Positions 12,793 to 53,600 of a stretch of DNA of 64,000 nucleotides are shown here, piece by piece (within the stretch, counting starts at the first letter, position 1; each line of letters opens with the position of its first letter). The translations under genes and the position numbers were made by a program. This DNA comes from Cyanophora paradoxa CCMP329 (taxonomy: Eukaryota; Plantae; Glaucophyta). The notes beneath the pieces were generated by a model. It did not search any database. It saw nothing but the letters and a program-made list of their open reading frames with translations, and was not told where the DNA came from. The DNA is taken from NCBI GenBank assembly GCA_004431415.1, contig QPMI01000545.1, positions 1 through 64,000 on the forward strand, given 5' to 3'.

Positions 12793-13552
12793 GCGTTGGA
12801 CCTGATTCCTTGTTTCCGCTCGTCCCCTGCTGCCCCTGCGCCCTCTGCGCTCCCCTTTTTTCTGAGCGCGCGAGGCGGCCTCTCGGACAGTAGATGTGCT
12901 TGTACCTATCCACCAGATTTCTACTATTTCCTAGTCTCCATTGCCAGCCTGCGCTTCTTTTTCTCGGCTTCCTCTCGCGGGGGGCTTCAACGTAGTTCCG
13001 CTGCTCTTCAGACTCTGAGGTGTAGTCGTGTTTACTGATGATCGTGCCCTGAACGCCGAATATTAATACATGTACATGTCGCTGCCGGCGCTGCCGGCGC
13101 CGCCGCCTCTAGCTAGCGCTGCCGGCGTGCAGCGCCTGTTCCTGCGGGCCAGATATCGATCGGGCGACGACGACGTCGACAGGTCGCTGTGTCGTGCGGG
13201 CTGCGGTCGACCGTTAACGTTGGACGGGGGGGGATCGACGTCGTTGCCGTCGTTGCCAAATTCGCTGATCAATGATCTTGATCATGATCGAAGCTCGAGC
13301 TCAGCGGCTGAGGCTGAAGGCAGGTCGCGAGGTGGGGGGTACAACACCACACACCAAAGCCAAACACAGCATTCTTCAGCTCGCAGCACAGGCACTAGCC
13401 AGCGGTGTAAACGCGTAGCGGGAGGTATTGTGAGCACTGTAAGATCAGTCCTGGAAGCTCGCGAAGCCGTGCTCCTGTCATACCCATCGGCGGCACAACG
13501 GCATAGCAGCAGCCCGCTTGATCGTATCTGATTTAGTCGGCAAGCCGCAAGC

Positions 13553-15023
13553 ATGGCGACGGCGGCGGCTCCGGCCTCGTCCTCGCAACTGCCAATGTGA
13601 GTCGAGCTAGGTGGAGTTAGAGTGCATCCGAGCTGAAGCTAGCTGCTCCAAGTAAAACAGCTAGCTTGTCTTGCTGCTCCCGCCCAGCCCAGGATCGGCC
13701 AGGGGCCGCTCGTTGGCGCGAGTTGAAGCTGACGCTTGGACGCCGCAGGACGAACATGGAGAACGCAACAGATGTCGCGGAATATGAGGAATGGGAAAAG
13801 ACGCGGCCTGTATTCGATCTGGGCAAGCAGCGGCGCCTGGTCCGCCCCGCCGCCGTCGGAAGCACCCGCCCTTTACTCCTCCTGATGGGGCGCCCCGACC
13901 GCGCAGCGAGTCGCGAACATAGTGCTGGCCGTCTTGCATCTCGCGACATCGTTGGCACTGTACGGGGCGACACACCAGAACAAAGACAGGACGGCGGCAC
14001 GCCCCTCCCTCCGCCGCCCCGCCCCCGGACTCGCCCCGCCCCGGCTCACGTCCCCCGCAGTACCCCATATTCAGCACCTTCACGGCGGACCCGAAGCTGA
14101 CGAAGATCTGGCCGTCGTTCTTCGTGCCGGGAGTCAAGAAGGTGGCGACGGCGCACCTGGGCTTCTTCTCGGCGACCTTCCTGCTGCTCGCGGCGGTCGA
14201 CCACGCCGCCGTCGCCCTCCCCGGCCTCAACGCCGTCTACAACCGCATGCTCTCCCGCAACACGGTGCGCCGCCCCGCCGGCCCCGCCGCGCCCCGCCGC
14301 GCCGGGCCCGCCCCGCCTCACCGCCCCCGGCGGCAGAACTTCTTCCGGTGGATCGAGTACACGTTCAGCGCCTCGATCATGCGCGTCGAGATCGCCATCC
14401 TCTCCGGCGTCGCCGACATCCACACCCTCTGGTGCATCTTCGGCCTCACGTGCGCCCCCGTACCCCCCACCGCTTCCCCCCCCCCACCTTCGCATCCTCA
14501 CGTACCCCCGCAGGGCCGTGACGATGCTGATCGGGGCGATCTTCGAGGGGGAGAACCGCGCCTACTTCGGGAGCATCCTGGAGTCGGAGAGGATCCGGTG
14601 GACCACGTACTGGATCGGCTTCGTGCCCCACTGCTTCGCGTGGGCCGTTATCCTCTGGTGCGCTCCCCGCGCCCGCCCGCCCGTCGCCCCTCACCCCCGC
14701 GCCCTTGACCTCCCGTACCCCTCAGCCACTTCTTCCGGAACGTGAACGTGGCGGGGGCGCCGGGCTTCGTCTGGGCCATCATTGCCCTCGGTGCGTACCC
14801 CCGCGGGCGCGATTCGCCGGCGGGGCGGGGCCTGAGGCCGGGGCGGGGGTACGCGTGCGCAGAGATCGTGCTGGACGCTGCGTTCGCGATGAACCTGGGC
14901 TTCCAGTGGCTCAACCTCGGGCCCTGGCGCGACTACGTCTTCGGCGAGTGGATGTTCCTCCTCCTGAGCCTCACCGCCAAGCAGCTCCTCGCCTGGATAG
15001 CGTACGGCGGCGCCTCCCGGTGA
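13553..15023 (+). CDS. Heliorhodopsin, 8 exons: 13553-13596, 13749-13839, 13907-13996, 14061-14264, 14337-14449, 14514-14657, 14726-14790, 14863-15023
   Basis: All seven introns keep the frame. TM1 His (LAVLHLAT), TM2 His (AAVDH), TM3 NFFRWIEYTFSASIM, TM6 APGFVWAII, TM7 GEWMFLLLSLTAKQLLAW with the retinal-binding Lys at 14979-14981 (SxxxK motif of heliorhodopsins). Confidence 0.95.
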
Positions 15024-15732
15024 CGTGACCTACACTACTATAGTAGTACTTACATTTTAGTGATAGCGCAACCCTAGGCGCCAGGTAGTAGCGTTTCAGC
15101 ATTACTTGATTCGTTCTGTGATATAATTCAGCTCACTCCTTCTGTTCTGGCTGCTAGCGCCCGGGCAGCCGCGCCCGCAGCCTGCAGGGCCGGTCGAGAG
15201 CGCGGTGGGGCATGCTGGGCGCCCGGACTGAAAGAGCTCCGAGGCTCGGCGCGGATCAGCGCATTGCCAAGTTGCGCGCTGAAATTGAGCGCCGTTAAGC
15301 GAGGATAGAGTACGGCCGGCTTAAGCTTCGCCTCGCGAATTACATTCATATACGTACTACGTATACGGTATATATACGTATACGTATAAATTTGATCGAT
15401 GTACATGTCGACGTACGCGTCGACATCCGATGATCGAGCTTGCAGATCTGGGGGTAGCCAGTTGAGAGCCCCAGCCGCTGAGCAGATCAGCTCCCGTTCG
15501 ATTCTCTGTTAGCTTTGCCTGCTTTGCTTCTCAAACCGCGCTGGACCCAGCTGCCGTGCCGCCCAAAGGTCGTCGGTTCCTCCGAGCCCGCCGGCCGTCA
15601 TCGTCAGGGCGCCGGGTCGTAGCCTCGAGCTCTGACCGCGGCAGCGACTGCGTGCGATCAGGAACATGATCAATCGCTTATCCTAGCCATTTAGGATCAC
15701 AGGGTTGACCTCGCGGTCGCCTTCGTCGGTAC

Positions 15733-35555: not shown

Positions 35556-36038
35556 CCTCGATTCCTTTTAGACACTCCGCCAGCTTCGACTCTCCCCTCT
35601 AGTGGTGTCCTACGTTTCGCCTCTCCTACTGTTCTGCCGCCTCAAGATCTGCCTCCTGCGACTACGTCGATGTACGTCTTCTCAGAGTCTAGTTCTGCTG
35701 TTAGCTCTATCTTGTCGTCTTCGTCTAGATCTTCGTCTTCGACTGTAGTTCCTCGTGCTCGTTCTCCTTATTCGCTGCGCCCCCGTGCTCCTCGTCGTTC
35801 TAGTGTGACTAGTTATATATAGTACTTCTGCGTTGACGTCCTTGAGCTCTTCTACTCCTTCTCCTCGTGCTCGTTCTCCTTATCTTTTGCGTTCTTCTGA
35901 TCGTGTCCCTTCTCGTGATCCCTCTTAATTCTGTATTTTGTGCTAGTTTACTGTATCTTTGATTTGTGATTGCTTTGTTGTCCTTAATATCACTACCTAC
36001 GGGGGGTTCGCCCCACCGTGGTCTCTCAAAAAAAAAAA
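35556..36038 (+). mobile_element. 5'-truncated non-LTR retroelement-like relic (ORF tail, 3' UTR, stem-loop, poly(A))
   Basis: T-rich reading frame with T-ending codons, unlike host genes. Contains PRARSPYxLR twice (exact 21-bp repeat at 35751-35771 and 35863-35883), TAA at 35926, hairpin ACGGGGGG-TTCG-CCCCACCGT at 35999-36019, and A11 at 36028-36038. Confidence 0.55.
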
Positions 36039-36080
36039 CATGCCATACCAATCCAGAGGAAATTCTAGCGGGGCACAGTG

Positions 36081-36502
36081 AGCGATTGGCGCAGAAGCGA
36101 GCACGTCTGGAGTGCATTCTAGATCAGGCGAGATCGGGGATAATTTAACTTCCGCGCGAAAGCCGCTCTATGCAAAAGTCGGCGCTCTCCGGGGCCGCGC
36201 CCCGGCCCCCTCTTCAGCCCTCGACAGCGCAAGGCAGCTCAAGGCCCGCCCAGGCCCCCCCGCTCCCCCCAACTGCCCTTCCCGGGACTCGAACGCTGGG
36301 GCAATAAGACGCCGGCCGGGCGCACTGCTAGCTATAAATATAGCTCGGCTAACCCGCCGCGAAACTGGCCGGTTCCTCTTCGAATTCGTGTGGCCCTAGC
36401 TGCAGGAAAATCTCGTACCGCATCCGCGCGATAGTGAACATCAAATATGTATTAAAAGGCATCCTATCGCATACTAAACGCTTCACTTCTGCGCCAATCG
36501 CT
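36081..36502. repeat. 17-bp perfect inverted repeat pair bracketing ~390 bp (degenerate TIR element?)
   Basis: AGCGATTGGCGCAGAAG at 36081-36097 and its reverse complement at 36486-36502, with weaker similarity continuing inward. Confidence 0.5.
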
Positions 36503-36759
36503 TCTCCCAAGTTTATTAAGCGAAATCGTCCAGACGCGTACCTACGTATATACCTTCCGAGTCTAATCCGCGTACTAGGGTAGGTCAACGTTGTTAGTAA
36601 CTTGTTACGCAGCTTACGCTTCAGTCGTAGCAACTCGGACCGTCACGGCGTCCCGCTCCCAAAATTAAACGAAACGCGATTCAGTTCGAAGGAACTTCCC
36701 GGTTCAACGGTTAATTCCGACTCTCAGAGTCTAGATCATTATCTGATGATATAGATCTA

Positions 36760-36984
36760 CCGTAGGGCACTTATAATTAAGTACCGCGGGCACTTAACTA
36801 ACGCGGTACCAAATTAACGCGCCAAAAGTTTGTTAATCTGAGTTGCATGGTGCCGCGTTGATTTGCGGCTGAGAATTTTAAAAACCGCGTTAATTTGGTA
36901 CAGCGGTATTTCGCTCAGATCTATAGAGGAGGGCCATTTTTGAAACCGCGTTAATTAACGCCGCAGTAATTTAGTGCCCGACGG
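36760..36984. mobile_element. Degenerate MITE
   Basis: TA then CCGTAGGGCACT (36760-36771); right end AGTGCCCGACGG (36973-36984), 11/12 match. Internal inverted AATTAACGCG / CCGCGTTAATT motifs. Confidence 0.55.
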
Positions 36985-37439
36985 ACCGGCGACGGTACGG
37001 TACTGTACGGTCTGTACCGTAGTACCTAGTACTACGGTACTAGCTAGTTCCGACTCAAAGTACTAGTTCCGAGTCGTTTGAGGAATACTCAGTGACTATG
37101 ATATTAGGGTTGATTCTTTTTTTCGTAGTCGTCGACGTGCATGAACGACATATATGTATAATATACATATTCAACGTGAACGTGCATGCACGTACCGGTA
37201 ATACGTATACGGTCCGGTATATATGGCGGGCCGCGGCCCGCGGGGCGGCCGGGGCCGGCCCGGCGCCGGCGGCGCGGGCCGCCCGGCGGGCCGGCGCCCG
37301 GTTCGGACCGTCGGACCGTTCGGTACGGTCGACGTCTCAGTCACTGCATGAGTCTCAGTCTCAGTCTGTCACGTGCACGGACCCGGGGCCCGGGGGCCGG
37401 GAGTCCGGGACTCACGGTCCGAGTCACGAAATACGTATA

Positions 37440-37727
37440 CCGTAGAGCAGGAAAATACTGGACGCAGAAAATTACTGGAGCCCGAAAAACTTGTGGACCG
37501 AAAACTTGAGTCAGTCCACTAATTTCGGGCTCCAGTATTTCCCTGCTGCTAAGCTGCCCTATTCAGTACCCCCCATAATTACCGCCCCATACAAGCCTGA
37601 CAAGCTTTAAGATTTTGGTCCACTAATTTCGGGCTCCAGTATTTTGCCTAAGGGAGGGCCAATTAAGTTTTCTAGTCCACTATAATTTCCGGCCCACGGG
37701 CCACTACAGTATTTTCCTGCTCTACGG
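37440..37727. mobile_element. 288-bp Tc1/mariner-type MITE
   Basis: Perfect 21-bp TIRs CCGTAGAGCAGGAAAATACTG (37440-37460 and 37707-37727). TA on both sides (37438-37439, 37728-37729). Internal repeat GTCCACTAATTTCGGGCTCCAGTATTT occurs twice, plus an inverted partial copy. Confidence 0.85.
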
Positions 37728-38613
37728 TACCACGCCGGGCGCCGGCGTGACTCTGCCAGCTGCAGCCTGCAGGCTGCATGTGACGCCGCATGCGCACGGA
37801 CCGGCGGCCCGGCGGCGGCGGGCCGGCCGCCGGGCGCCGCGGCGGCGGCCAGGCGGCGGGCCGCGGCCGGCCGGGCGGCGGCGCCGCCGGGCCGGGCGCC
37901 GGCGGCGGCACGGTACTACGGAGTCTACGGTAGCACGGTCGACGTCCGACGGTCTGATCATCATGCATGAATCACAGGCTTCACAGCAGCGCTAGCATGA
38001 TCATGAGGCTCTGACTCTGTGACTCTCAGGCTAGCCTAGTAGAGCCGCTAGACTCAGTGCCACGGTGACTGTGAGCACTGACCGTCGGACTCAGCATACT
38101 ATGATATGTGCGCATTGCCGCAGACGTATACGTACTGGACAGTCTGGAGTCTCAGTCTGGACTGCAGTGCCAAAACTGCCAAGTTGCGCACTGCCGCAGT
38201 CACTGAGTGCCGCGGTACTAGTATACTAGTGCGCGTGCGATCATCGGATCGCGAGGCGACGCGAGCAGTCTGCACGCGCATATAATTATATGATCGTATG
38301 CAAGTCCGTCCGACGGTCGGACGCACGCGTACGGTATATATACAGCTGCAGCTGCAGCGCCGGCTGAGCCTGCACAGGCCCGGGGGGTGACAGGCCGTGC
38401 GTGGCTCTAGCTATAGCATCTGCTAGACTGCGCTAGTAGCCTAGTAGGTTAGCCTAGACGGACGGAAGCTCGCGGATTGCCGTACAAGTCACGAAGCGGA
38501 GTCGACGTCGCGATTGAAGTCGCGGAGTCTGCGAGCATCAAAGTTCTCGGGTGATCACATCTTTATACGTAGTACTAGTTCGGCGCACTCGCGCCGGGCA
38601 ACCAGCTGCAGCG

Positions 38614-41600
38614 ATGGACAACCGGCCGCTGCGTCGGTCGCGGTCGCGATCGCGGCCTGCTCCGGTGCTGCCTCCTGCACCTGGAGTTCGAGTTGCTATG
38701 AGTCGGGCGGTAGCGAACGCATCCATGCGCGTGCTGTTCTTGTGCGTGGTCTCTGCACTCTCTCTGCAGCCGGTAGCTGGTGAGCTCGCGACCATTCCTT
38801 TCTTCTGCACGTGCACGTGCACGCGCACGCGCGCCAGTTGAAGCCGGCAATCGTCCCCTGGCTAACAGAGGTTTGTACTCAGCTGCTCTTCCAAACGGCG
38901 TGAAGCCGCATATCACGGCGGTCCGTTTATTTCGAGACCCTGACTCCGTTTCGCTGGCATCATTCATAAGGAGTATCGCAGATCTTTCCGAACTACGGCA
39001 GCATTGTCGGCGGGACACGCTTCACGCTCAAAGGCTACGGATTCAGCAACGTGCGTTTCAGTCCTGACCCTATAACTGCGGACATCCGCGGCCGGCTTTC
39101 GACTTCGGCTGAACACGGAGAATTCGCAGTATTCTGGAGGATTTGAGAGCAAAAATATTGTACGCGCATCCTTGCATGCTCTGCCGCGACGCTCAGTCCC
39201 GATCATCGGTTAATATTGATGATATCGATGTTTCCCCTCTTTCCGCGCTGCGGCAAATAGGTCACGCTCGGCGGCGTAGAATGCGAAGTGGTAAGCATAT
39301 GCGCATGCGTGAGAAGTGTACATGTTCGTCCTTTCTTTCTCTTGCACCTTACTCTTCTTCCGCATGCGTGCAGGTCCTCTTTCCCGAAATGAAGCAAACG
39401 GACCCCTGCACCACCGCAAGTCAGATTGTCTGTATCACTGGCCCCAAAAGATGCGGGAGCCTGCCCTTGCACGACTGTCAAGGCCCTGTGCGTCGTATGG
39501 CCGAATAACGTCCTTCATTAATTATAAATGCCTGACCCCCAGCGCAGGTCCCTATCAATCTGCGGGTGCAGGAGAGTATCCTCTCTTTTGAGGACGCAAC
39601 TTTCGCGAGTGGCGTATCCACAACGTACGACTATCAATTCACGAAAGATCAGAATGGCAACGAGAGGAATCTCTGCTATATAGGTAGACTTTCCACGTAA
39701 CTCTTTCGGCCGAGTCCTCCCCCTCAAAAGCACGCAGGGAGCGTATGGCCTCCCTTCGGCAGTGCAGGCGACCTCGCGCGCGTCAACTGGGGAGGCACTA
39801 CAGCTCGATACGCGGGATATGACCCGTGCGCACCTCTCATGTAGTAGCCGTGGAATCTCCATTTAATTATATAATCTCTTTCGGGCAGTATCACCGACAT
39901 CGGCCCCCTCGACAATCTATATAGCATCGCTGGTAAGTAGTGAATAGACAGGCTTAAAGCACCGCGCCTTTGAGAATTTGTGACAATGAACTCTATATGC
40001 GCATATAATTATAAATTAAATGCTTTGCGTCCCACTCGGCTCTGCGCAGCGGGGCGTCAAGAAGGGCGCTTTATTCTCATCAACTCGACGTAAGCGCAAT
40101 CGATATCCCCTGTCCGGATCCACGTTAAGCGAACTTTGTTTTGTGATTGCGAAAAATCCTTTCCGATCAGGACCAATGCCGCATTTGCGCCTGTCGACAA
40201 CTATGCCGACCTGAACCGTAATAGGATTTTGATTGGATATGAAGACGTTTACTTGCGGTGCGATCCACGAAGCGATCGCGGAATGCGCTAATAGATGTGT
40301 CTTTACGTCTGACAATCGCTCATTGTCGATCATGATCATAACACTCAGATCCTCCGTCGCTGGTCTTGTCGGCGAGAGTGCTCCGGGGAACTACGAGCTG
40401 AAAATGCAGGTGTGATGCATGCCTATGCCTCGTCTCGTCTCAATCTCTCAATCTCTCGTATGCCATGTGACGTTTAAGCTCTGCCTGATGGCTTTCGTCT
40501 CTCAGTTTGAGAAAATGATTGACCAGTACTATCCAACAAATCCCGTCAGAGGATACTGCTACACGCCGCTAAGCGCCAAAAAGATCGATGGTCAGGGGAG
40601 GCTCTACTCGTTCCAGGTCCGGCCCGGCGGCCGTGCTATTGAAAACTCGAAGCCTGTAATTTGAATCCGGGTTTCGCGTCTGGTGACAGATTGTGCCTGC
40701 TGTGACCAGCATTAGCACCAGCCGTTCGTCTACAGAGGGCGGCCTCAAGCTGACCATTAAAGGTGAGTGTTCGGGCTCGCAATTTACTTGGCGTTGCACC
40801 CTTTCATTTGACGCTGGTCAAAAGGAACGAACTTTGCCGGAGTTGCCGAGAACACGACAGTCGCCGTTGCTGGCATAGATTGTCCCGTCAGCTACTCGAC
40901 GTACGGTACTCGAATTTCCGCGCATCGATGTTCATGATCAGACCATTGCGCGATCCTGAGCGTGCAGACACGGTCATCTGCACAACCGTGAGGGGGACGC
41001 CGACTGCGGTCGCCCCCGGCCAAAAATTCCTCGGAGGGCGCGGAGTGCTAGTGGAGCGCTGGTATGGGTCCTTTTCGAACAATCTCGGCGCGCTGAAGAC
41101 CGCGATAGCGGCTCGCCCCGCGGACCGTTCGTACATCGTGCCTTCGACTTTCGATGGCGGATTCCGCTTCGACCAGAATTACGGGCAGCGGATGACGGCG
41201 GTTTTCGTTTCTCCGTGGAACACTACCCTCACTCTGTTCCATTGTAAGAAGAGCTTGCTTGCTTGCTTTCCCGAAGAGCTTTCCGGCCCAGCCTTCTGGC
41301 ACCTGGCACCGATATCGATATCTAACACATTTGATTTCCGCTCCAGCCTCATGGCACGTTGGCGAGCTTTGGGTGGGACCCAATATGACCAGGTCCGAGC
41401 GCCCAGTCGCTGACGCGGCCGCAAGGTTTTCTAACGGTTTACCTAACGTTCTTTTATGTGTTCAGTTTATCGAGAGTGGCCTTCGCTACCTGGTTTCCTA
41501 GTGACGGGAAGCCTTACAAGTACACATCCGTGCGGCCTGCTCGATATTCCGAATATATATCTCTCAGATCGCAGCACTCACTCGTGACATTCGAAAGCAC

Positions 41601-44600
41601 TGGGATGACAGCTTCAAGTCGGAGCAGGTCTCCGCAAAGATACGCGTCAAGGCTGGCGAACCGCTCTATATGGTCTCGTATTACGAATTCCACGGCATTG
41701 CGCACGAACGGTCCTTCCAAGAGATCAGCGCTAAGATAGGGTGCGCATATATATAGATAAGTATATAGGCTCATGTACTTCAAAGTCTCTACATCTGTTG
41801 ACCCCGCCTCAGTGGTCCGATACTAAACAAGAAGGATCTCCCCAACGACCGGAGCGTCTATCCAGCAACGATGCGTTGGCCCAAGGAGGGCAGCAGCGAC
41901 GGGGGAGACATGCACTACGGTTCGGTTCTCCGACGCCCACTTAACGTGCTAGATTAGCAAGCTAACATGCAGGGCTCTACAGGCGGTTTCCCGTACGCGG
42001 ACGACGAGATGCAGGTAATTCAAGATCGAGTTTTGAAATGGATTATGATCACTTTCAGCACTCATGATCAATTGCAAGACGCAATATTAAGCGTATTTTG
42101 CAGCGCATCTACGCTTCTACAGCGATGACGGGGGACCTGCAGACCATCGTGCTCTCGGCAGACACATCCCTCTCCATGCAGATCGGGGGCCAGACGGTGA
42201 GCGCAGCGGTGGCCGCGGGGGCAACCGAGGAGAACGTCCGGTCGGCGGTGCTCGGCATGCTCAACTCACAGAGGACGACCGGTGCAATCCGCGGCGGTCT
42301 CGCGGCGCCTTTCGTGTACGACAGCTTCGAGAACACCACGATCGTGTACCCGGACGAGAGCTCTGGCGCCGGCTCCATCACGACTGGCACTGCTTTCTCG
42401 GGCTCTGCCTCGCTATCTCTCCCGAATTCAAAATCGCTGATCATATTCCGCGACTGGAGTGCGCCATTTTGCTTTTTCGTATACGTAGCTAGGTTGAGAC
42501 TCAGTTGTCATTCTCTGTCTTTGTTTGATGCAGATTTCCTGCGGCGCACAAGCCTGAATTACCGCCCCTACTCCAAGCAGATAGTGCGGTTTGGGTACTG
42601 GACCAATGAGTTTCCTGTGGTGCGCAAAGTAGACTTTCTCGATAGACACACGTTTTCGCCCATGCGCTGATGAGGACTGCGATCGCAACTTGCACACGTG
42701 CAGCTCTGCCTCGCGTACCGGATCTCTTCTGGGGGATCGATCACCATTCAGGGTACGTGTACGCAAGCCGACGATTAATCGCAAGCTCAAGCCAATCCTA
42801 CAGCCAAGATCAATGGCATCGACGCTCGTCAGACTGTCACTGTCTCCTTCACGACGGATGATACGTGGCGGTACACGTGCGTAGATGTTTTCGCGCAGGT
42901 ATGCACGTTCCTCAATCGCAAGCTTCCATTTAGAAATTTCTTATATTAGTAAAAGTTTGACCGGGGTACCTCTCCACTTCGAAGCTCGGGAAGAAACAAA
43001 TCACTGGCATGTGGATTCAAACGGGAGCCTCGGGCCAACACTACATTGACGATTTCAGCATCAACAAATATCCAATTGGTCTATAAGTCCTGCGCATGCT
43101 CCTCTATATAAATTGCTTCCATCTTTCGATTGGGGCCCTCGCTCATAAAACCTGGCCACAGACTGGGCCTTCAATGTCACTGTTACGCGTACGACAAGCG
43201 GCTCCGACTACCAGTACCAAATTACGACGGAAACGTGCTCACCCGTTCCTGTCATTGGCTTGACGGCGGGTACGGGTTCGACGGGCCTGGCAACCGCCGC
43301 TCCGCAAGTAACTGGATCGTTTACGATATCTTCCGACTGGGAGCCGCTTTCTCGCGCCAAAGTCTCCGCGGGTCTCGGGCCATTCACATGGGGCTCCTCG
43401 GCCGCCGCCGTCCGCTCGGCCTTCGCCTCTGCGGGGGTCGAGGCCGGCGTCGCGGCGGGTGGATGGACGAATCGGACGCATTGCCTTTACTACTACGAGG
43501 TGCGCTGCATTTTGTGATCGCCTGTGCACTTATATTTGCATCGGCATGCGATTGACGTCGTCGTTCAGTTCGAGTTCAACAACCTGCCGGGCGACCTGCC
43601 AGATGTGCCGGTGACGTTCGATTCCCTCGCCCTTTCATCGGGCTCGGGATCCATCGCAACGTGGGTTGACGAGGTGATTGAGGGTGGAACGCTGATATCC
43701 CCAATCGCTGGCGAGTTCTTGTATCTGCACGGTACATATCTCCTCGCACCACCGTTTCTCCTTGCTTCGGAGCCGTTTCAATAGTTTTGTGTCGATCAGA
43801 GTCCACGCCGCAAGTGCGCGTCGCGTCGAACGGCGTCGCCGCAACTTGCAAGCCAGTTGGCACGAGCACATGGCGGCCTTGCGCTTTCGACTACTCCGAC
43901 GGTCCGATCCAAGCCTTTTCAGCCCCTACATATACGCTTTGCCTTATAAACATTTGCTGATCATGGGGCGCTCTCTTCAGCTGCCACACCAGCTGTTGAG
44001 TCCGTCTCGCCCACGGAAGGCGCGGGCGGCGCAACTCTAGTGCTTACAGGAGATTTCAAAGGCCTCAATGAAACCTTTGTCGTTGTTGTCACGATTGGAG
44101 AGGGTATCTGCGACGTGCTTACGGCAGCAACGTCGAGCATCACCTGCCGCACGCCGAACCTGGCCGCCGGAGTCTACCCCATTGCGGTCAATGTGCTCGC
44201 CCTCGGATTCGCGAAGTCGAGCGCCACATTCAAGTACAATCTTGGCAAGCCTTGATTCGAGCTTGATTGCGCATCATATATACTAAACTACCGCGTCTTG
44301 CAGAGCTGTCTAGCGTATTCCCGACCACAACGGGCATTTACGGAGGCTCGAACTTCACGATCTCGGGCGTGGCGCTTGGTCCTCTCGCCGACACTGAGAC
44401 CGATGCTGTAATCACCGTGGGGAGCTCCCCATGTCCCGTGATCGGCGCTTCATACGCCGCAATCGTGTGCACAGCTCCAGCAAAGGCAACCGGATCGTAC
44501 GACGTCGCAGTGACCATTGGCGGCCAAACGGAGACATTGACGGCCGCGCTGATGACTGCGACTGGTGCGCTTGTTCGAAGCTTAAGGCTGAATATGAGGC

Positions 44601-47600
44601 TTTGAAACCTTTCGATTTCATGGCCTCATGATCACGCGCAGCGCGTACTCCATCGATCACCTCGATTACGCCGGATTCGATCGGCTCCGCCGCGACGACA
44701 ACTGTCTTCACCATCGTCGGCACGCAGCTCCTCGAGGCCGTTTCCGTTCAGATCGGGGCAGAGGACTGCGAGTTCGATACAGGGAGCGCCACAGACTCCA
44801 AGATCGTGTGCACTCTTTCAAAGCAGTTTTCAAGCGGCAACTACTCCGCTTTCGTGACAGTCGCCTTGCTGGGCAAAACGAACTCAATCAACATCGTTGT
44901 GGGAACCCGTGCGATTTTTGTCTAGTACTAGTACTCAGAATCCCGTCAACCCTATACATATATTGAGCGGTCAAAACCGCAGAAATCGCGGTCGTGAGCC
45001 CAACGGCTGGCTCGACTCTCGGCTTTGGCACCATCACGCTGACGGGCTCGGGCTTCCCGTACAACACCACTGCAACATCGATCGATCTCGTCTCCGCGGA
45101 TCTTAGCGTAGTCGTACCTTGCGTGCTCGCTTCTGCGCAAGCCTCGAAGCTGATTTGCTCACCAAGGCCGTCCTCTCCGCTCTCCACCTCTTCGATTACT
45201 ACTGTGACCATCGTGCGCTTCTCAGGCGCATTCAACACGAGCCTCCCTGGGAGCGGATACGACTTCGATCCAGCAAAGACGCCCACCGTCACGGGCCTTA
45301 CGCCCACGGAGTCAGCTACGCAGACGTCCATCCTCGTCATCGGCACGGGCTTCGACCTGTCCACTGATACTCCGGTTGTGACCATTGGATCCAGCTCGTG
45401 CAACGTCACGTCGCTCAATGCGACTGCCGTCGAGTGCACCACGGGCGACGAGCGGCCGGGCCTGCGCGCAGTTACCGTCGTCTTCCCGGACATCGGCAAG
45501 GCGACAGGCTCCGCTTCTCTCAAGTTCATCGCAAGTGCGTCTTGAAATTAACTTGTGGTTTCTTATGTTGCCTTCGATTTCGGGCCGGGGAAGGCTGATC
45601 ATGAATTGCGGTTCTACACGTACAGTTGTCACGGGTCTGTCGAGCCGCGAAGCTCTCTCTGGCGGTGGGCTGGACCTCGGCATCTCGCTCTCTGGAGGCG
45701 TCCAGCTCGCTCCGAACGCCAGCGTTGTGCTGGTGAAGGACTCGACGAGGGCCGAGTGCCTCGTGCTCAATTCTACGGTTGGATACCTGCACTGCAGGAC
45801 GCCCAAGTTTACGTTGCTCGGCAACTACACCGTCGCCTCAGTCGGAGACGCGGATGTCGTGTGCCGTGATGGCCAGGATCCGCCGTGCTACATCGATGTC
45901 ACAGCACGTGCGTTAAGCTCGCATATGCATTGTTCGCATTCTGGTCTGGCGTGCAGTTCTGACTTCTAGCATGTGCGCGCGCAGGCTTCTCTCTGACGTC
46001 GATAAGCCCTATTTCAGGAAGCCAGGGTGACGTCATCAGCATCACAGGCACTTTCTTCACTGGGGCGTCTTACAACATCACCATTGGGAGTGCAACCTGC
46101 GCTTCACCTTCTGTCACCGACACGGAAATTACGTGCACGCTTGGGTCTGGTGCCGCGGGAATCTACGGTGTGGAAGTAGCTGTCGGCGATCTTGGCCTGG
46201 TACCGTCCGATCCTCCGCTCAATTTTACCTACTTCCACACAATCGATAACACGAAGACCGGCCTCTTGAAGAACGACAACACCTATTCGCTGACATCCTC
46301 CATTAACGGCGGCGCATCCCTCTACATTCAGGGCACGGGCTTTGGCTTCGTAAAGGAGAACGTCACTGTTCTCGTAGGCTCGAATCCCTGCCCCGTGACA
46401 TCGATCACCCCGACCCGCATTCTCTGCTTGGTGCCGGCCGCGTCAGCCGGTGATGTAGCGATTTCTGTCCGCATTGCCGGAACAACAATCACCGGGCCAA
46501 CACTCTCGTATGCGTCTCCAGCAACGCCCTCAGTTTCTGCAGTGGCGCCCTCCGTCGCCGTGGCAGGCACACCCATTACCATCTCGGGGTCCTTCGGCAA
46601 CGGATTTGTCACTGGCGATGTCACGGTCACCGCTGGAACGGCGCCTTGTGTGGTCACCGCCTCCGCCGACACTCAAATCGTCTGCACGGTTGGAACTGGC
46701 CGTGCAGGCACTGGGCAAGCTCTCAAACTTCTGATCGCCGACCGTGGTCTTGCCACCGTCGCCGCTAGCGCTGAAACTGCGGTCGCCCTCGGCTTCACGC
46801 TATCCGCCATTGTACCCGCGGTCTCTGCCCGCAGCGGCGGGGCTCTGGTGACCCTCACCGGCACCGGGTTCGACACGGTCGCGACCAATGTGACGCTCTG
46901 CGGAGTTCAATGCAAGGTTTCGGCGATTACGCCCACTTCTGTGGTGAGCAAAGAAAATCGCTGGCTGCCGATCTGATCATACGAGATCGAACCTAAGCTA
47001 ACCACGGGAACAAATGCGATCAGATCTGTGTGACCGGGGCTCTCCGTAACTCTTCGTCTTTCATCTCGTACGCCGACGACTGCCCTATCACGCTGTCCGT
47101 GGCTCCGGGCACGGGGGCCGGGGCGAACACGACGACCTTCTACTCGAGCGGCCTGTTCGCGTACCCCGAGAACCTCACGCCCGTGGTTTACTCGCTGAGC
47201 CCGAGCCGCGGCTCCACTGCCGGTGGCACCGTAAGACCTTTCTGCTGCCCATGGGTTGTCGCCTCTCGCCGGTCTGCTGATAATGCGGCAGTGGATCACC
47301 ATGAGGGGTGAACACCTGAGTGGACTTGATGACGCGCTTCCCACGGTGACCATCAGCGGGCTCCCATGTAAAGTGGAACATTCAAACTCCACGGTGTTTA
47401 CATATTGCATTATCGCCATTCGCCGTGTTTTGTGGTGAGTTGCAAGCTCACGTTTATCCTCGACGCAGCACCTCATCTGCGTTACGGAAGCATCGAAAAA
47501 CTTTACCCCGGCAGTGCCCGTCGTTTTCATTCCTGGCCCCGGTTACGCCAACGTCTACGGAACGTATCAGTGGATCGACCTCTGGTTTGTTTCGGCTGTC

Positions 47601-50600
47601 GCTTATTGAAACTTTATCCAAGCTTACAGGGTTAACGTTCAGGTCGCGCCGAACGACCTGGGGAGGATTCGACATTCCGCAGGAAGGCGAATTCATCATC
47701 ATCGACAAAGATATGGTTTGCACGACCCGCGCTGACATAATATTAGCGGTCCCTCGCTCACAAAACTTTTCCACGCAGACGGTCCTGTTGGACGTCAGCA
47801 CCCCCAAGCTAAGCGTGCTGCTTGTCGAGGGCTCGCTCATCTTCGATGACAACCAGGACTTGGAGCTGAATGCAGGTGAGAATAGTCGGATCTGAAGCTG
47901 CGGGGCAAATAGCCATCGGGGAGTCAATGGTGTTCACTCTGCGACCCGCAGAGTACATTCTCATGCGAGGCAATCGATCTAGAATCGAGATCGGTACGCG
48001 CGACAGGCCATTCAAACACAAGGCGGTTGGTTCTGCGCCCCTATAGCTAGAGTCGATCTGAATTCTCTATATGCCGACATCGCACTGCAGACGATCACAT
48101 TGTATGGCACACCGGCGTCTCCGGAGGTCCGCTTCTGCGCATGCCGATGCTTCGATGATTGATTTTAGATATATATCGCTCAACCTCGGGGCGCCAGATT
48201 CCGAAATACGGCGCGAAAACTCTAGGACAACGCGGCGGAACGCTCAGCATGCACGGCACCCCGCGTCTCCCATGGACTCATCTAGGCGCCGTGCGTCTAA
48301 ACTCCTTATAATTACGCTCTCTCGCCATTTCTATTCTCACGAACTATACATGCACGCGCAGACTGCCTACATTGGCGATCGGAATATGTGTGCCGCCTGT
48401 CCTTGCATTTCTAGATCTAGATCTAGATCTAGATCTTTGGTCTTAAGCTTGATCGATCGCTCACTTCAATCTTTCAGCACGCTCAAGCAAGAGGTCGATT
48501 GGGACGTCGGGGGCGAGATCGTCATTGCCACGTCGGGCTTCGACGCCGTCGTCGAGTCGGAGAAGCGCAGGATCACCGGCGTCTCCGCCGACCGGCGCAC
48601 TGTATTCTTTGAGGAGCCTTTGAAGTATCGCCACCTTTGCGGTGAGAATTAATATTCACACGAAATTCATACACGCCTGCGATAAATTTCCTGATGCCTT
48701 GCCTGCAGTCATCGAGCGTTATGGTCCGCGGGAAGTTGACATGCGTGCCGAGGTGAGCGGCGCTAGATTAAGATCTAAGACTGCTTTGAAGGAAACCACT
48801 GAAAGCTTAAGCATCGTTCAGGTTATCTACCTGACCCGGAACGTGCGCCGGGTGTACACAAGCGATTGATAGAATCGTGATCTGAACGCTGACCGTGGTT
48901 CTGCACTGCTTTTGGACTCGCGATCGCAGATCAAGTTCCAGGGTGACCCGGAGTCGTTTGGGTACCGCTTCGGCGCCGTTCTATTCGTACACTCCATGCA
49001 ATCAATGCCTTCGATCACCCTCATCGGTGCTTTCCTCTGAAGTTGCCTGTACTTCGTCTATATTTCGCGCTGACGGTCTGCGCTTGCTCAATACGTGCAG
49101 ACAATGTTGGTGCGCATCGAGAGCGAAATGTTCCATTTTTACTGAGCTCACCAGTAAGCGATGCGCGCGCTTAAGCTTAGAGTTCCACAACGTCGGGCAG
49201 GCCTTTGCTCTGGGCCGATATGTGCGCATTTGCATTTATACCCTTCTCAACTATCTGCATCGCGCTGATCTTTACTCACATTCAAACACAGGCTATTCAC
49301 TTCCATATGTTCGTTCAGGCTGTTCAGTTCTCGGCAATTTCGCACTGTCGCGTCGCTAATATTAATCCCTTGCGCAATCGTGAGCAGGATGGACAGCATC
49401 TCGCAGTCATACTTCATGTCCAACTCCGTTCACCAATCGTGGAATCGAATTATTGCAATCCACGCCTGCAACCATCTGCGCGTAATCAGAAACGTCGCCT
49501 GTTCGTGCCTTTCAAATTCGCGTGCCAGCGGGCGCCTCTCCGTCCACATCGAGCAATACAATCTTTTAACTTTTTGCTTTCCAGACATGATCTTCGGCAA
49601 TGCATTCTTCGTGCGTGATCATGATTCGTGACGTGCAAGGTTGCGCTACTGACCAGTTCATGCGCTCAGACGGAAGACGGTGTCGAGCGGGGCAACATAC
49701 TGGACGGGAATGTTGTGATCGGTGCCCCGCAAATGATCGATTCGCACACAAATGGCATCTGTCTCATTTGGAGGGTTAGGGGTGCTGCCGTCGGTGTCGC
49801 TGCTGAGCGAGGACCAGGAGCCGGTGGGTTCAATGTAAAATGGTCCTGACGCCCATCCGTCCCTAATTCATGCATGCTGTTGCAGACCGCGTACTGGCTC
49901 GTCCACCCCGACAACATCATGTGCGGCATTTTGAGCACAATATCATCCCCTTGCTCTGTTCTATGTCTTGACTGCTGTGCGCAGCATCAATAACGTGGCC
50001 GTCGGCGGCATGTGGTCGTATTGGTACAGACTCAACTCGTGAGTACCATGCCTCCACCAACGTTGCCGCAGAAGCGATCGATTATATATTGCATCGCAGA
50101 GCTCCGATGGGAGCTTCGTTTGGCGTGCGGCCCACTGTGTGCGCTAGATACGACAAGCTGGGCACTTTCCGGTGCGCATGCATTCGGTCTCAATTCAATT
50201 TCTGCGGCCGCGCGGGTGCTGACCTTGTGAACTTCGCGTAGGAACAATACTGCCCATGTAAGTTTCGAAAACTATTCCGCCATTTAATTCGCAAGCTTCT
50301 GAGCCTGCTTGTTCCGGTTGTCAGGCCGCAATTCGATATGGCTTCCGTATCAATCCTGGTGTGTTCAACCTCACTTTAATTATGCTGCAATTGCAATCTA
50401 AATTTTTCGCAGACTACTATCCTTCAAACGATCCTTGCAACTCGGAGGTGGTCAATAACGGCCCCGCAATGCCCGCCAAGTACTTGGCCACGGCGGTTTT
50501 CGAGGTGCACTCAGCGCACGCGTGCATTGCTTCAGATTCGGTGCATTATCGTAACCGATTGCAGAATTTTACCGCGTACGCCAATGGAGAGAACGGCGCG

Positions 50601-53600
50601 GTCGCCTCCCACATCGGCTCCATAGTCTTCAAAGGGTTCAATCTCGTCGACAATGCGCACATGGGCATGGAGGTGACCGGAATCCATCCCGGTGAGAATT
50701 CAAAGACCTCTTGATCATATATAACTCGGCCCCGTTTAAACCCGCCGCCGCTCACGTCGGTGTCAACGTCCAGGTCCCGGAGGTACGCAAGGCCGGAGAA
50801 ATCACACATTTTAATCAGTCGCACCTGCCTGTCGTGATCCTCGTATGTTTTGTCTCGTTGCAGGTTCGCTCGACGGCTGCACGGGCGGAACTTCTGGGTC
50901 GGGCGACACGCACGTACGTACCTGACGTCTGTTTCCACGCACAACTCCGTTTATCCACATAATCGAGCTCTTAGAGATCGCGCGAGAACATTTCAAGGAT
51001 CGATGACGCGCTGATCGTCGGACACACTGGATACAACATTCAACCCGTCGGGAGCAAGTTCACAATTCGTGGGGGCATCTGGCTTCCGAAGTCGTTCGGA
51101 TTCTCCGTCAACAATGTGGCATGTTCTTTCCAATTTTGTTCCAAAGCGACACAGAGCGGGACTCAATCCTCTCGCAGACTTTTGTTAATTTTGGCGCAAA
51201 CACGGGGGACAGCGCCATGGTGCATAGCTCAAAGGCAGTGTCTACGGAGGGAGCTTTCAACACTTGGACATCGAACCTGACCTTCATCAATGTGGCGAAA
51301 CGTGTCGAACACCCTTGGGAGCAAGCAGGTGCTTGATCGCAGATCACAAATGGTTCTGATTCGTTTTAGATTCTTCTGCCGACGAGCGACTCTTCGCAGG
51401 TGTCCTGACTGACTTGGACGGGACCCTTACTGGCCAGAAAGGGGCGCAAGTGTTGGCAGAGACAGCGCACAGCCGTGCTCTCAAGGCGGAATGCACCCCC
51501 TACAACCCTATTTTCTCCGGGACCGTCTGCAACGGGACTGCTTGGCGGCGTCTGTATCTAAACAACGAGTGCGTTGAACTTTGGGCCGATTGGTCTCGTC
51601 ATTTTAAGTTTTCTGTCCGCCTGAGCCACGCGTAGTCTACTCCTACCCGCCTCAATGGTCAAGAAAGCCCTGCTGGTGACCGATGTTGAGACGAATGCCA
51701 CCATCTCTGTACAAGAGTTCTTTTTAAATGAAAACGGCCACGTGTTCTTAGTCAAGGTTGGTCGGACATATTCACTTCAGGTTCGAACTTTTTCCCTTGG
51801 ATTTGGCGCCTCTGGTTTCGTTTCGCTCACTGGAGTCGGGGGACTCTAGCTGGATGTCAACAGTAAGGGACAACCCAGCGTGCCTGCAACCGTCGAGTGC
51901 GTCTCCGAATGACCTCAGAGAAGCTGACCAGGGCGCTGATCGTTCTTGTGGCGATGTTCGCGCAGCCCGACACGAATGATGCTGAGGGCAAATGGATGGC
52001 GGGCCGACGAGGTGGCCTACGTCCGGCTCGACTTTGCTAAATGGCGACATCACGTCCACATCACACCAAAACTCGTCGGCACTGAACAAGCGCAAGATCC
52101 CTACTTCGCTGTCAGTATGGACACAATCTACGGAAAGAATGCCACCACGGCCATGAGCAGCGTTGTCCTTGCCAACGGCACATGGGTGCTGGCTATGGGT
52201 GCGCATGTATCTGTTTTATATGAGATGAGTGACAGAACTCAATTGAAGAAACCCCGCAATCGTCTTCAGGTGTGTACAAGGACACTACTCCAACAGAGAT
52301 CAAGTGAGCTGCAGCTGCAGCCTTTCTCCACACTCATCGTGACACTAAGATTGCCATTAATAATGTCTTCCCGCCGCGCAGGGCTGTCGTTCATGGTGCC
52401 TTGATGCATCGACCATGACGTTCTCTGTCGTTACATGGCGGACGTTAAAACTGACGCCGTTCGCAGACTGTCCGGACACTGCCGGCGGATGCGATGACCT
52501 GCTGCCGAAATCGCCAATCGGTGATGCGAATAGGTGGTATCTTTGGAGTGACCCCGCGACATGGAACGGTACCGTCCCCAAGGATGGTGACGACGTTAAC
52601 ATTCCAAGCTGGCAGAGAGTACTGATCGTGCGCTCCCGATCCAGTTCAGCGCATGCCTCGCACATGTGTAATCAACATGATCCGCGCTATGCATCTGACT
52701 GTTTTATGCAGGACACGAAAACGGCGTCATTAAGACGTCTCAGAATTTACGGCCAACTTGCGTTCGCGGAGGACATTTCGAATATGACTCTTTCTCTTAC
52801 CGCCAATATAATTATAGTCAATGCGGGCGCCAATTTTACAATTGGCAACTCCACGAACCCCTTCAAGAACAAGGCCGAGATCGTTCTGACGGGCTCCCAA
52901 GCAACCGGTGAGTAACCACCTGCAATTGCAAGACCCTTATATAATTAGAGCTTACACTAATACGTATACGTTTATACATTCAGCCGCCGGTGCCGCGTGG
53001 TCGGTAAGAATTTGCATGTATTTACCTTGAATGTTCTGATGTGATCATGAAACTGACGCACACTCTCATGTTGTCGCAGCTCAACAACGACGTCTCCGTT
53101 CCTTCTAAAGTGCTCGCGGTATTCGGAAAGTTCGAAGCATACGGAGTCGCCCCGACGCGCTCCTGGACGGTGCGTTTACCGTTTTTTTCGTGCGACGTGC
53201 ATGCATGTGCATATGCCATCGATCGCGACGCGCGCGCACTGACCTGTGATAACGCTCCAGCGCCTCGCTCGGAACGGGAAGGTCGGAGACAGCTCGATCG
53301 TCATAGAGAGCGCCATCGCCAAGGTCAACGACACGATTGTCATTGCCCCGAGCGACTGGAGTTTCCGCGAAAGCCAGGAGTTCGTCGCGCTGGCGGTGTC
53401 CACTGCTGGAGACGGCGCGTCCACGCTCACGCTCAACAAGCCCCTCGCCCACCAAGTCTGGGGTACCAAATACGTCATCAACCGCAAGGACGGGACAGTC
53501 GAGGTCATTGACATGCGAAACGAGGTTCGTATCTCAGAAGATGTCCGATTCCAATTCGAGGTGTCGGAACGATCGCGAACACTTCCGCAGGTCGCAGTGC

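Follow-up and report, generated by a model that had tools for sequence, protein, structure and literature searches.

The stretch of Cyanophora paradoxa CCMP329 DNA analyzed here (64,000 nucleotides of contig QPMI01000545.1; "the window" below) carries a heliorhodopsin (HeR) gene. The HeR locus is an intact, transcribed, and correctly spliced nuclear gene of this biflagellate glaucophyte alga. Its product, designated P0001, has the glutamate-serine-glutamate (ESE) motif and is, judging by its sequence, a member of a eukaryote-type HeR subfamily that lacks the lateral fenestration of canonical HeRs. We consider that P0001 is most likely a non-transporting photosensor, in line with the other cellular HeRs that have been tested, and we hold this reading with about even confidence. 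Light-driven proton transport by P0001 is a reasonable proposal as well, though an unproven one.

Family membership, fold, and core residues

P0001 (303 amino acids; EukProt gene tig00021073_g18008.t1, Cyanophora paradoxa) was used as the reference sequence for all protein-level comparisons. All exon translations and split codons of the locus are identical to it. P0001 matches the Pfam profile PF18761 with 213 bits (cut-off 26.7; residues 45-301 on profile positions 1-241) and the NCBIfam HeR profile NF038020 with 175.6 bits (cut-off 100). AlphaFold2, run with 150 relatives, gave a model with a mean predicted local distance difference test score (pLDDT) of 91.7 and a predicted template-modelling score (pTM) of 0.87. 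The model has seven helices, and its AB loop forms a beta-hairpin (strands 75-80 and 101-107). The ten best Foldseek matches of this model were all structures of TaHeR or 48C12, with template-modelling scores for the target (TM-target) of 0.84-0.91 and root-mean-square deviations of 2.0-3.3 Å. The modelling proposed in an earlier first-pass annotation of this DNA thus gives the HeR fold, with template-modelling scores of 0.87-0.91 to TaHeR and 48C12. P0001 is a heliorhodopsin by sequence and modelled fold, and retinal binding is predicted.

The same annotation called the core HeR residues intact, which is correct for H56, H123, R147-W148-I-E150-Y151, E279, and S286...K290. In the alignment to 48C12, H56 corresponds to H23, H123 to H80, R147 to R104, W148 to W105, E150 to E107, Y151 to Y108, S154 to S111, M158 to M115, E192 to E149, Q265 to Q216, Y275 to Y226, E279 to E230, S286 to S237, and K290 to K241. 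S286, K290, R147, W148, E150, and Y151 are invariant or nearly invariant among the relatives. The His pair of transmembrane helices 1 and 2 (TM1 and TM2) and the cytoplasmic polar cluster are complete (H56, H123, E192, Q265, Y275, E279). The charge balance is an equivocal guide to the presumed inverted topology (cytoplasmic N-terminus): 11 Lys/Arg residues lie in presumed cytoplasmic segments versus 7 outside, 6 of them in the AB loop alone. This loop (residues 70-107; positions 13979-13996 and 14061-14156) has only 2 Asp/Glu residues, contrary to the "negative-outside" pattern of the 48C12 subfamily.

Unusual residues of the extracellular half

Residues were mapped by phmmer alignments to 48C12 and TaHeR and by equivalences printed in the literature. 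R159, E161, H172, H220, E251, and D255 all map to the protein's extracellular half. This half is described as wholly hydrophobic in 48C12 and TaHeR, and the same holds for Cv06, save one Thr. R159 corresponds to 48C12 I116 (generic position 3.54). E161 corresponds to 48C12 L118 (position 3.56, the position of bacteriorhodopsin D96) and is the third letter of the TM3 motif, which reads ESE in P0001 versus the HeR-typical ESL (PMC9601134; PMC13739731). H172 is equivalent to 48C12 V129, an extracellular contact at the dimer interface (bioRxiv 10.1101/2025.11.27.691015). H220 is equivalent to 48C12 G169 and TaHeR G171 (position 5.54), where the G171W substitution blocks retinal uptake in TaHeR (PMC13739731). 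E251 corresponds to 48C12 L202, TaHeR I199, V2HeR3 E191, and bacteriorhodopsin T178. Finally, D255 corresponds to 48C12 F206, TaHeR F203, V2HeR3 W195, and bacteriorhodopsin W182 (position 6.50); in TaHeR, F203 is sandwiched between I199 and the retinal (PMC9448325).

In 48C12, F206, G169, and C166 line a lateral fenestration that exposes the beta-ionone ring (bioRxiv 10.1101/2025.11.27.691015). The residues that define such a fenestration are replaced in P0001. Two aromatic residues face each other in such HeRs, at 162 and 206 by 48C12 numbering; only the first has an aromatic counterpart in P0001 (Y213), the second being D255. Instead of Gly169 without bulky residues at 166 and 210, P0001 has H220 at 169 and F217 at 166, together with a small residue, A259, at 210.

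The first-pass annotation stated that typical HeRs are hydrophobic at the sites of the two TM3 residues (R159, E161) and the two TM6 residues (E251, D255), and this is borne out. Among canonical HeRs, positions 159, 161, 220, and 255 are hydrophobic in 92-96% of sequences and position 251 in 68%. It also pointed to the extra TM6 glutamates of V2HeR3; by the mapping, E251 is the exact homologue of V2HeR3 E191 via 48C12 L202 and TaHeR I199. A systematic scan of the P0001 helices found no additional odd polar residues.

A co-varying triad in a eukaryote-type subfamily

We aligned the 245 closest relatives of P0001, i.e., sequences of at least 200 amino acids collected in two independent searches. 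All counts of relatives given in this text refer to this set. An acidic residue occupies position 255 in 81 sequences. Position 159 is polar in every one of them (His in 36, Arg in 27, Lys in 10, Asn in 7, Gln in 1). None of the 81 has Gly at position 220, where His (40), Phe (13), Trp (10), Tyr (8), and Gln (6) are found. In the 156 sequences with Phe or Tyr at position 255, residue 159 is hydrophobic in all except six (Thr or Ser), and Gly220 is present in 135. Trp at position 255 was found in none of the relatives.

Mutual information with average product correction, calculated for 23,038 column pairs, places the pair 159-255 at rank 1, 220-255 at rank 4, and 159-220 at rank 9, in a ranking that is inflated by shared ancestry. 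Known contacts of the 48C12 crystal structure served as positive controls: T59-Q291 (equivalent to the Q26/S242 cluster) is at rank 2 and H172-H230 (equivalent to V129'/Y179 across the dimer) at rank 11. The phylogeny was built with FastTree only, leaving out the columns under study; V2HeR3 and other viral HeRs, EhHeR, and McHeR are not included in it. The Phe/Gly type comes out on this tree as a single clade with strong support (81 rows, support 100), and the remainder is of the acidic type. Positions 159 and 255 reverted jointly in the lineage of P0019 and P0130. An independent-pairs test on the tree had two contrasts only and is not significant by itself.

The R159-H220-D255 triad is thus, at the sequence level, the mark of a large, mostly eukaryotic HeR subfamily and is not private to P0001. 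All named members are eukaryotic: the choanoflagellates Salpingoeca, Microstomoeca, and Choanoeca, as well as Lapot, Chaetoceros, and Cyanophora. The three residues co-vary, their charges are complementary, and G169 and F206 are known to lie close together. We therefore favour reading them as a buried basic/His/acidic triad in place of the fenestration, and we infer that they are in physical contact. We found no description of the basic/His/acidic triad or of any Cyanophora HeR in the literature searched (subscription literature was outside the search), and nothing relevant on the characterization of choanoflagellate HeRs.

The triad also co-varies with further residues around the beta-ionone ring: T184 (48C12 M141), P219/A223 (the Pro shifts from position 172 to 168), and A297. 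These pairings hint that helices D-G were remodelled in concert in the eukaryote-type subfamily.

These results sort the remaining residues pointed out by the first-pass annotation. It described a network of Arg, Glu, Asp, and His near the retinal. By homology the triad does lie beside the beta-ionone ring, but R159, D255, and H220 are common to 81 of the 245 relatives. The annotation also listed extra His residues in ADIHTL and FVPHCF and an Asp that precedes the TM2 His, and all of these are present. However, the His at 172, which maps to the dimer interface, is found in 55 of the 81 acidic-255 sequences; H220 belongs to the triad; and Asp122 occurs in 61% of relatives, for which reason its status as an oddity is rejected. 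Since they are common among relatives, H172, H220, and D122 are traits of the family or subfamily.

E161, E251, and the second Cyanophora heliorhodopsin

E161 and E251 are rare among the relatives (5 and 17 sequences, respectively), and the tree requires about five changes for either of them. They do not co-vary (rank 15,075 of the 23,038 pairs). The combination R-E-E-D at positions 159, 161, 251, and 255 occurs in P0001 only. The proposal that this set defines a clade therefore fails: it is a singleton, and its two glutamates have about five separate origins each. P0001 is also the only sequence with ionisable residues at all five outer-half sites (159, 161, 220, 251, 255). No orthologue of P0001 closer than 47-52% identity was found among 5.8 billion proteins of two protein collections.

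Cyanophora paradoxa has a second HeR, P0002 (tig00022104_g23814.t1), encoded on another contig. It is the sister paralogue of P0001 (support 99*), with about 50% identity. P0002 reads H-M-H-E-D at the five outer-half sites, Gln56 replaces the TM1 His, and Asn122 replaces the Asp.

Photosensor or ion transporter

As of 2025, ion transport in HeRs was known from a single viral branch among more than 3,000, and most HeRs are regarded as sensors acting via partner proteins (PMC12873467). It is because of these base rates that a photosensor is the most likely reading of P0001. Two cellular proteins, EhHeR of the host alga and McHeR of Micromonas, have the E191 glutamate, and transport is absent from both (PMC9448325). 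The cytoplasmic proton-accepting residues are all conserved in P0001.

In such a photosensor, the substitutions of I116 by the basic R159, of G169 by the His/aromatic residue H220, and of F206 by the acidic D255 would create a buried ion pair or hydrogen-bonded group that closes the fenestration. The triad would remove the motif for carotenoid binding or retinal entry and would tune the chromophore. The photocycle would be slow: the Schiff-base proton would move to the cytoplasmic-side cluster E150/H56/H123/E279/Q265 and then back. E161 and E251 would keep their protons or form hydrogen bonds with the triad, with an influence on colour, kinetics, and the rearrangement of protons inside the protein but no steady net transport of ions.

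Several points weigh against this reading. Ionisable residues at five of five outer-half sites set P0001 apart from all of its relatives. The hallmark E251 is combined with E161 at the donor position 3.56, and no tested non-transporting HeR is known with both. D255 and E251 are one helical turn apart on the face of helix F that stacks I199, F203, and the retinal in TaHeR, and such spacing is the geometry that would be expected for a proton wire. The helix E pattern (Pro168, no Pro172, no Gly169) is common to P0001 and viral subfamily 2. EhHeR and McHeR are compared with P0001 by the Glu at the E191 site and may differ from it in the triad. Finally, side-chain orientation and hydration in P0001 are deduced from homology and co-variation, not from coordinates.

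Inward proton transport by P0001 is accordingly a serious possibility, if an unlikely one. In V2HeR3, the current is lost on E191Q substitution; E191 carries a proton in the dark and has been compared to bacteriorhodopsin D96, and E205/E215 form the proton-accepting group (PMC9448325). By analogy, the Schiff base of P0001 would deprotonate toward the cytoplasmic acceptors and would be reprotonated from the extracellular side via protonated E251 and/or E161, with the R159-D255 pair as a polar link beside the retinal. Besides the ionisable sites, the spacing of D255 and E251, and the helix E pattern, the following observations are consistent with this mechanism. E251 aligns with V2HeR3 E191, a residue that marks the transporters and that transport requires, and Q265 and E279 match the acceptor positions E/Q205 and E215. 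E161 is at the donor site of outward pumps (D96/E108), giving ESE versus ESL. The A155/T181 pair is identical to that of V2HeR3.

However, W195, the gate partner of E191, is missing from P0001 and D255 stands in its place. E191 of V2HeR3 is "essential but not sufficient", and W195 and E/Q205 are thought to be necessary too (PMC9448325). The viral transporters do not have Arg and Glu at 3.54 and 3.56: two transporting HeRs from Tara viral sequences, VTara8957 and VTara4616, carry Thr and Ile there, with E...W in TM6 (PMC9448325 supplement). The tested cellular HeRs that bear E191 are negative, a single branch of HeRs transports, and the buried Arg may obstruct cation passage. The proton or ion path envisaged by the first-pass annotation is a conceivable but minority reading; the Glu at the E191 site was insufficient in EhHeR and McHeR, and P0001 is without Trp195. 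It is rather doubtful that P0001 is the first cell-encoded (non-viral) ion-transporting HeR, with a proton path unlike that of V2HeR3, formed by E251, E161, and an Arg-Asp pair in place of the Phe/Trp that flanks the retinal. If this were true, the eukaryote-type triad would be a scaffold on which HeR transport evolved.

It is considerably less probable that the outer-half cluster is a metal or small-ion site with His/Asp/Glu ligands, whose occupancy would modulate the colour or the photocycle and make P0001 an ion-regulated sensor. H220, D255, E251, and E161 are residues of the kinds that classically serve as ligands, 16 subfamily members have the His-His-Asp combination, and chloride binding in TaHeR is a reported precedent (PMC9385722). 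But position 159 alternates between His, Arg, Lys, and Asn, which fits a charge or hydrogen-bond partner of D255 and not a metal ligand, and the Arg found there in P0001 is not a metal-ligating residue.

Very improbable is a drifting duplicate, in which the charged substitutions would be damage under relaxed selection in one of two paralogues and retinal binding would be poor or nil: P0001 and P0002 are indeed sister paralogues, and there is no close orthologue in which conservation of E161 and E251 could show, but P0001 keeps every invariant residue of the family, with the Lys, the counterion, and the two His among them (it is P0002 that lost the TM1 His), it is expressed and correctly spliced in three studies, its structural model is confident, and E161 and E251 recur independently in other lineages.

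Gene structure and transcription

The gene has eight exons on the + strand (window positions 13553-15023), each of which was checked against P0001 (Table 1). The codons assigned by the first-pass annotation to Arg159, Glu161, Asp255, and the intron-split Glu251 are exact, and its description of an intron-bearing nuclear HeR gene of a flagellate is apt.

Table 1. Exons, selected codons, and transcribed span of the heliorhodopsin gene (window positions)
Feature	Position	Strand	Content and evidence
Exon 1	13553..13596	+	ATG 13553-13555; residues 1-14 and 2 nt of codon 15; joint 13596/13749 in X1, X5, X8; translation identical to P0001
Exon 2	13749..13839	+	Residues 15-45; cytoplasmic N-terminal region, start of TM1; transcript joints, match to P0001
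Exon 3	13907..13996	+	Residues 46-75; TM1; His56 (48C12 H23) 13937-13939; followed by a GC..AG intron
Exon 4	14061..14264	+	Residues 76-143; AB beta-hairpin, TM2; Asp122-His123 14199-14204 (His123 = 48C12 H80); Pfam PF18761 on exon
Exon 5	14337..14449	+	Residues 144-181; TM3; R147-W148-x-E150-Y151; alignment to 48C12
Exon 5, counterion Glu150	14355-14357	+	
Exon 5, Arg159	14382-14384	+	
Exon 5, Glu161	14388-14390	+	
Exon 5, His172	14421-14423	+	
Exon 6	14514..14657	+	Residues 181-229; TM4, DE loop, TM5; Glu192 (48C12 E149); His220 (48C12 G169) 14629-14631
Exon 7	14726..14790	+	Residues 229-251; beginning of TM6; the Glu251 codon opens with the final base, G14790
Exon 8	14863..15023	+	Residues 251-303; rest of TM6, TM7; AG 14863-14864 completes Glu251; Pfam 60 bits on exon
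Exon 8, Asp255	14874-14876	+	
Exon 8, Gln265	14904-14906	+	
Exon 8, Glu279	14946-14948	+	
Exon 8, Ser286	14967-14969	+	
Exon 8, retinal Lys290	14979-14981	+	
Exon 8, stop	15021-15023	+	TGA
Transcribed span	13450..15143	+	5' untranslated region extends past 13450; 3' end at about 15131-15143; spliced contigs, records of 1214-1233 nt

Seven introns (13597-13748, 13840-13906, 13997-14060, 14265-14336, 14450-14513, 14658-14725, and 14791-14862) are absent from contigs of the sequencing runs X1, X5, and X8, which belong to three studies. We guessed these runs to be RNA, and we treat their contigs as spliced transcripts because the exact excision of seven GT/GC..AG intervals has no other source. In run X15 the introns are retained and 94% of the sampled words are present, i.e., it is genomic DNA. 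No sequence differences are reported in any run. Alternative splicing that removes the TM6 Glu, named by the first-pass annotation as grounds for giving up its proposal, was not seen: the contigs of X1, X5, and X8 all have the joint of the last intron that keeps E251.

Intron 3 has a non-canonical GC donor, which the first-pass annotation had missed, and exon 3 hence extends to 13996. A GT at 13960 was considered as the donor and rejected: it breaks the frame, and the transcript contigs show the donor GC at 13997. Intron 4 is 72 nt long, in frame, and free of stop codons, and an open reading frame (ORF) at 14124-14708 runs through it into intron 5. Such read-through ORFs can mimic longer proteins in this GC-rich genome. 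A minor X1 contig (depth about 2.6 versus 60) matches 13552-13857, starting after the AG at 13550-13551 and ending 18 nt inside intron 2. It is flanked by unrelated sequence on both sides and could represent either an assembly chimera or a rarely used 5' exon or donor.

Two features lie outside the gene. About 320 nt past the stop codon, just beyond the transcript 3' end, there are AT-rich imperfect repeats of the TATACG/TACGTA type (15340-15400). Over about 20 kb of the window (36000-56000) the G+C content is 0.52-0.58, versus 0.63-0.82 in most of the remaining window, and long ORFs are scarce there.

Significance

The physiological role of HeRs is still largely open, and ion movement is known for one viral branch only. 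P0001 is an inexpensive and sharply defined test case: a cellular HeR in which the Glu that is the hallmark of transport is found together with a second Glu, at the position of the classical proton donor. Natural comparisons are provided by P0002, which has no E161, and by relatives with just one of E161 and E251. Independently of transport, about one third of the 245 closest relatives, mostly eukaryotic, swap the fenestration residues for a co-evolving triad. This subfamily falls outside the proposed rule that HeRs are two-antenna, carotenoid-binding proteins. The charge pair that the triad would set in the chromophore pocket is relevant to colour tuning and optogenetic engineering.

Comparison with known systems

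V2HeR3 and the coccolithovirus and Tara HeRs share with P0001 the HeR fold and core residues. E251 is equivalent to E191, Q265 to E/Q205, and E279 to E215 of this group. Both also have Ala and Thr at the SNap-bond positions, and in helix E both lack Gly169 and Pro172 and carry Pro at 48C12 position 168. In contrast, P0001 has Asp at 6.50, where the viral proteins have Trp195, and Arg and Glu at 3.54 and 3.56, where they have Thr and Ile. In the comparison of TM3 and TM6 motifs, the residues that P0001 has in common with the Tara viral HeRs are the TM6 Glu and Gln only. The P0001 gene is cellular and nuclear, with seven introns. Transport has been demonstrated for V2HeR3, whereas P0001 is a candidate on the strength of its sequence.

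48C12 and TaHeR (PDB 6SU3, 6IS6) have 27-30% identity to P0001 and, apart from the similarity of the model, share H23/H80, RWxEY, E149, Q216, E230, and SxxxK. They differ from it in the outer half, which is not hydrophobic in P0001 (I116R, L118E, G169H, L202E, F206D), in the fenestration motif, which is gone, and in the AB loop, which is basic and not acidic. Cv06 of Chromera velia (PDB 9VFC) is the only solved eukaryotic HeR and matches P0001 in sequence with E = 1.3e-21. Unlike P0001, it keeps the F254/G219 fenestration and is of the canonical type, not the polar-triad type; it showed no transport.

Bacteriorhodopsin and the proteorhodopsins, pumps with DTD or DTE motifs, resemble P0001 in the carboxylates at 3.45 and 3.56 (E150 and E161 of P0001). 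They belong to another family. P0001 has Ser at the TM7 counterion site, Asp for Trp at 6.50, and presumably the inverted topology of the HeR type.

The other polar-triad HeRs, e.g., those of Salpingoeca rosetta (PTSG_08586), Microstomoeca roanoka, Choanoeca, Lapot gusevi, and Chaetoceros, as well as P0002, have 38-52% identity to P0001. They share the basic residue at 159, His or an aromatic residue at 220, Asp255, and usually His172. None of them joins Glu161 with Glu251: P0002 has H-M-H-E-D, with Q56 and N122, and the Microstomoeca protein has R-E-H-L-D.

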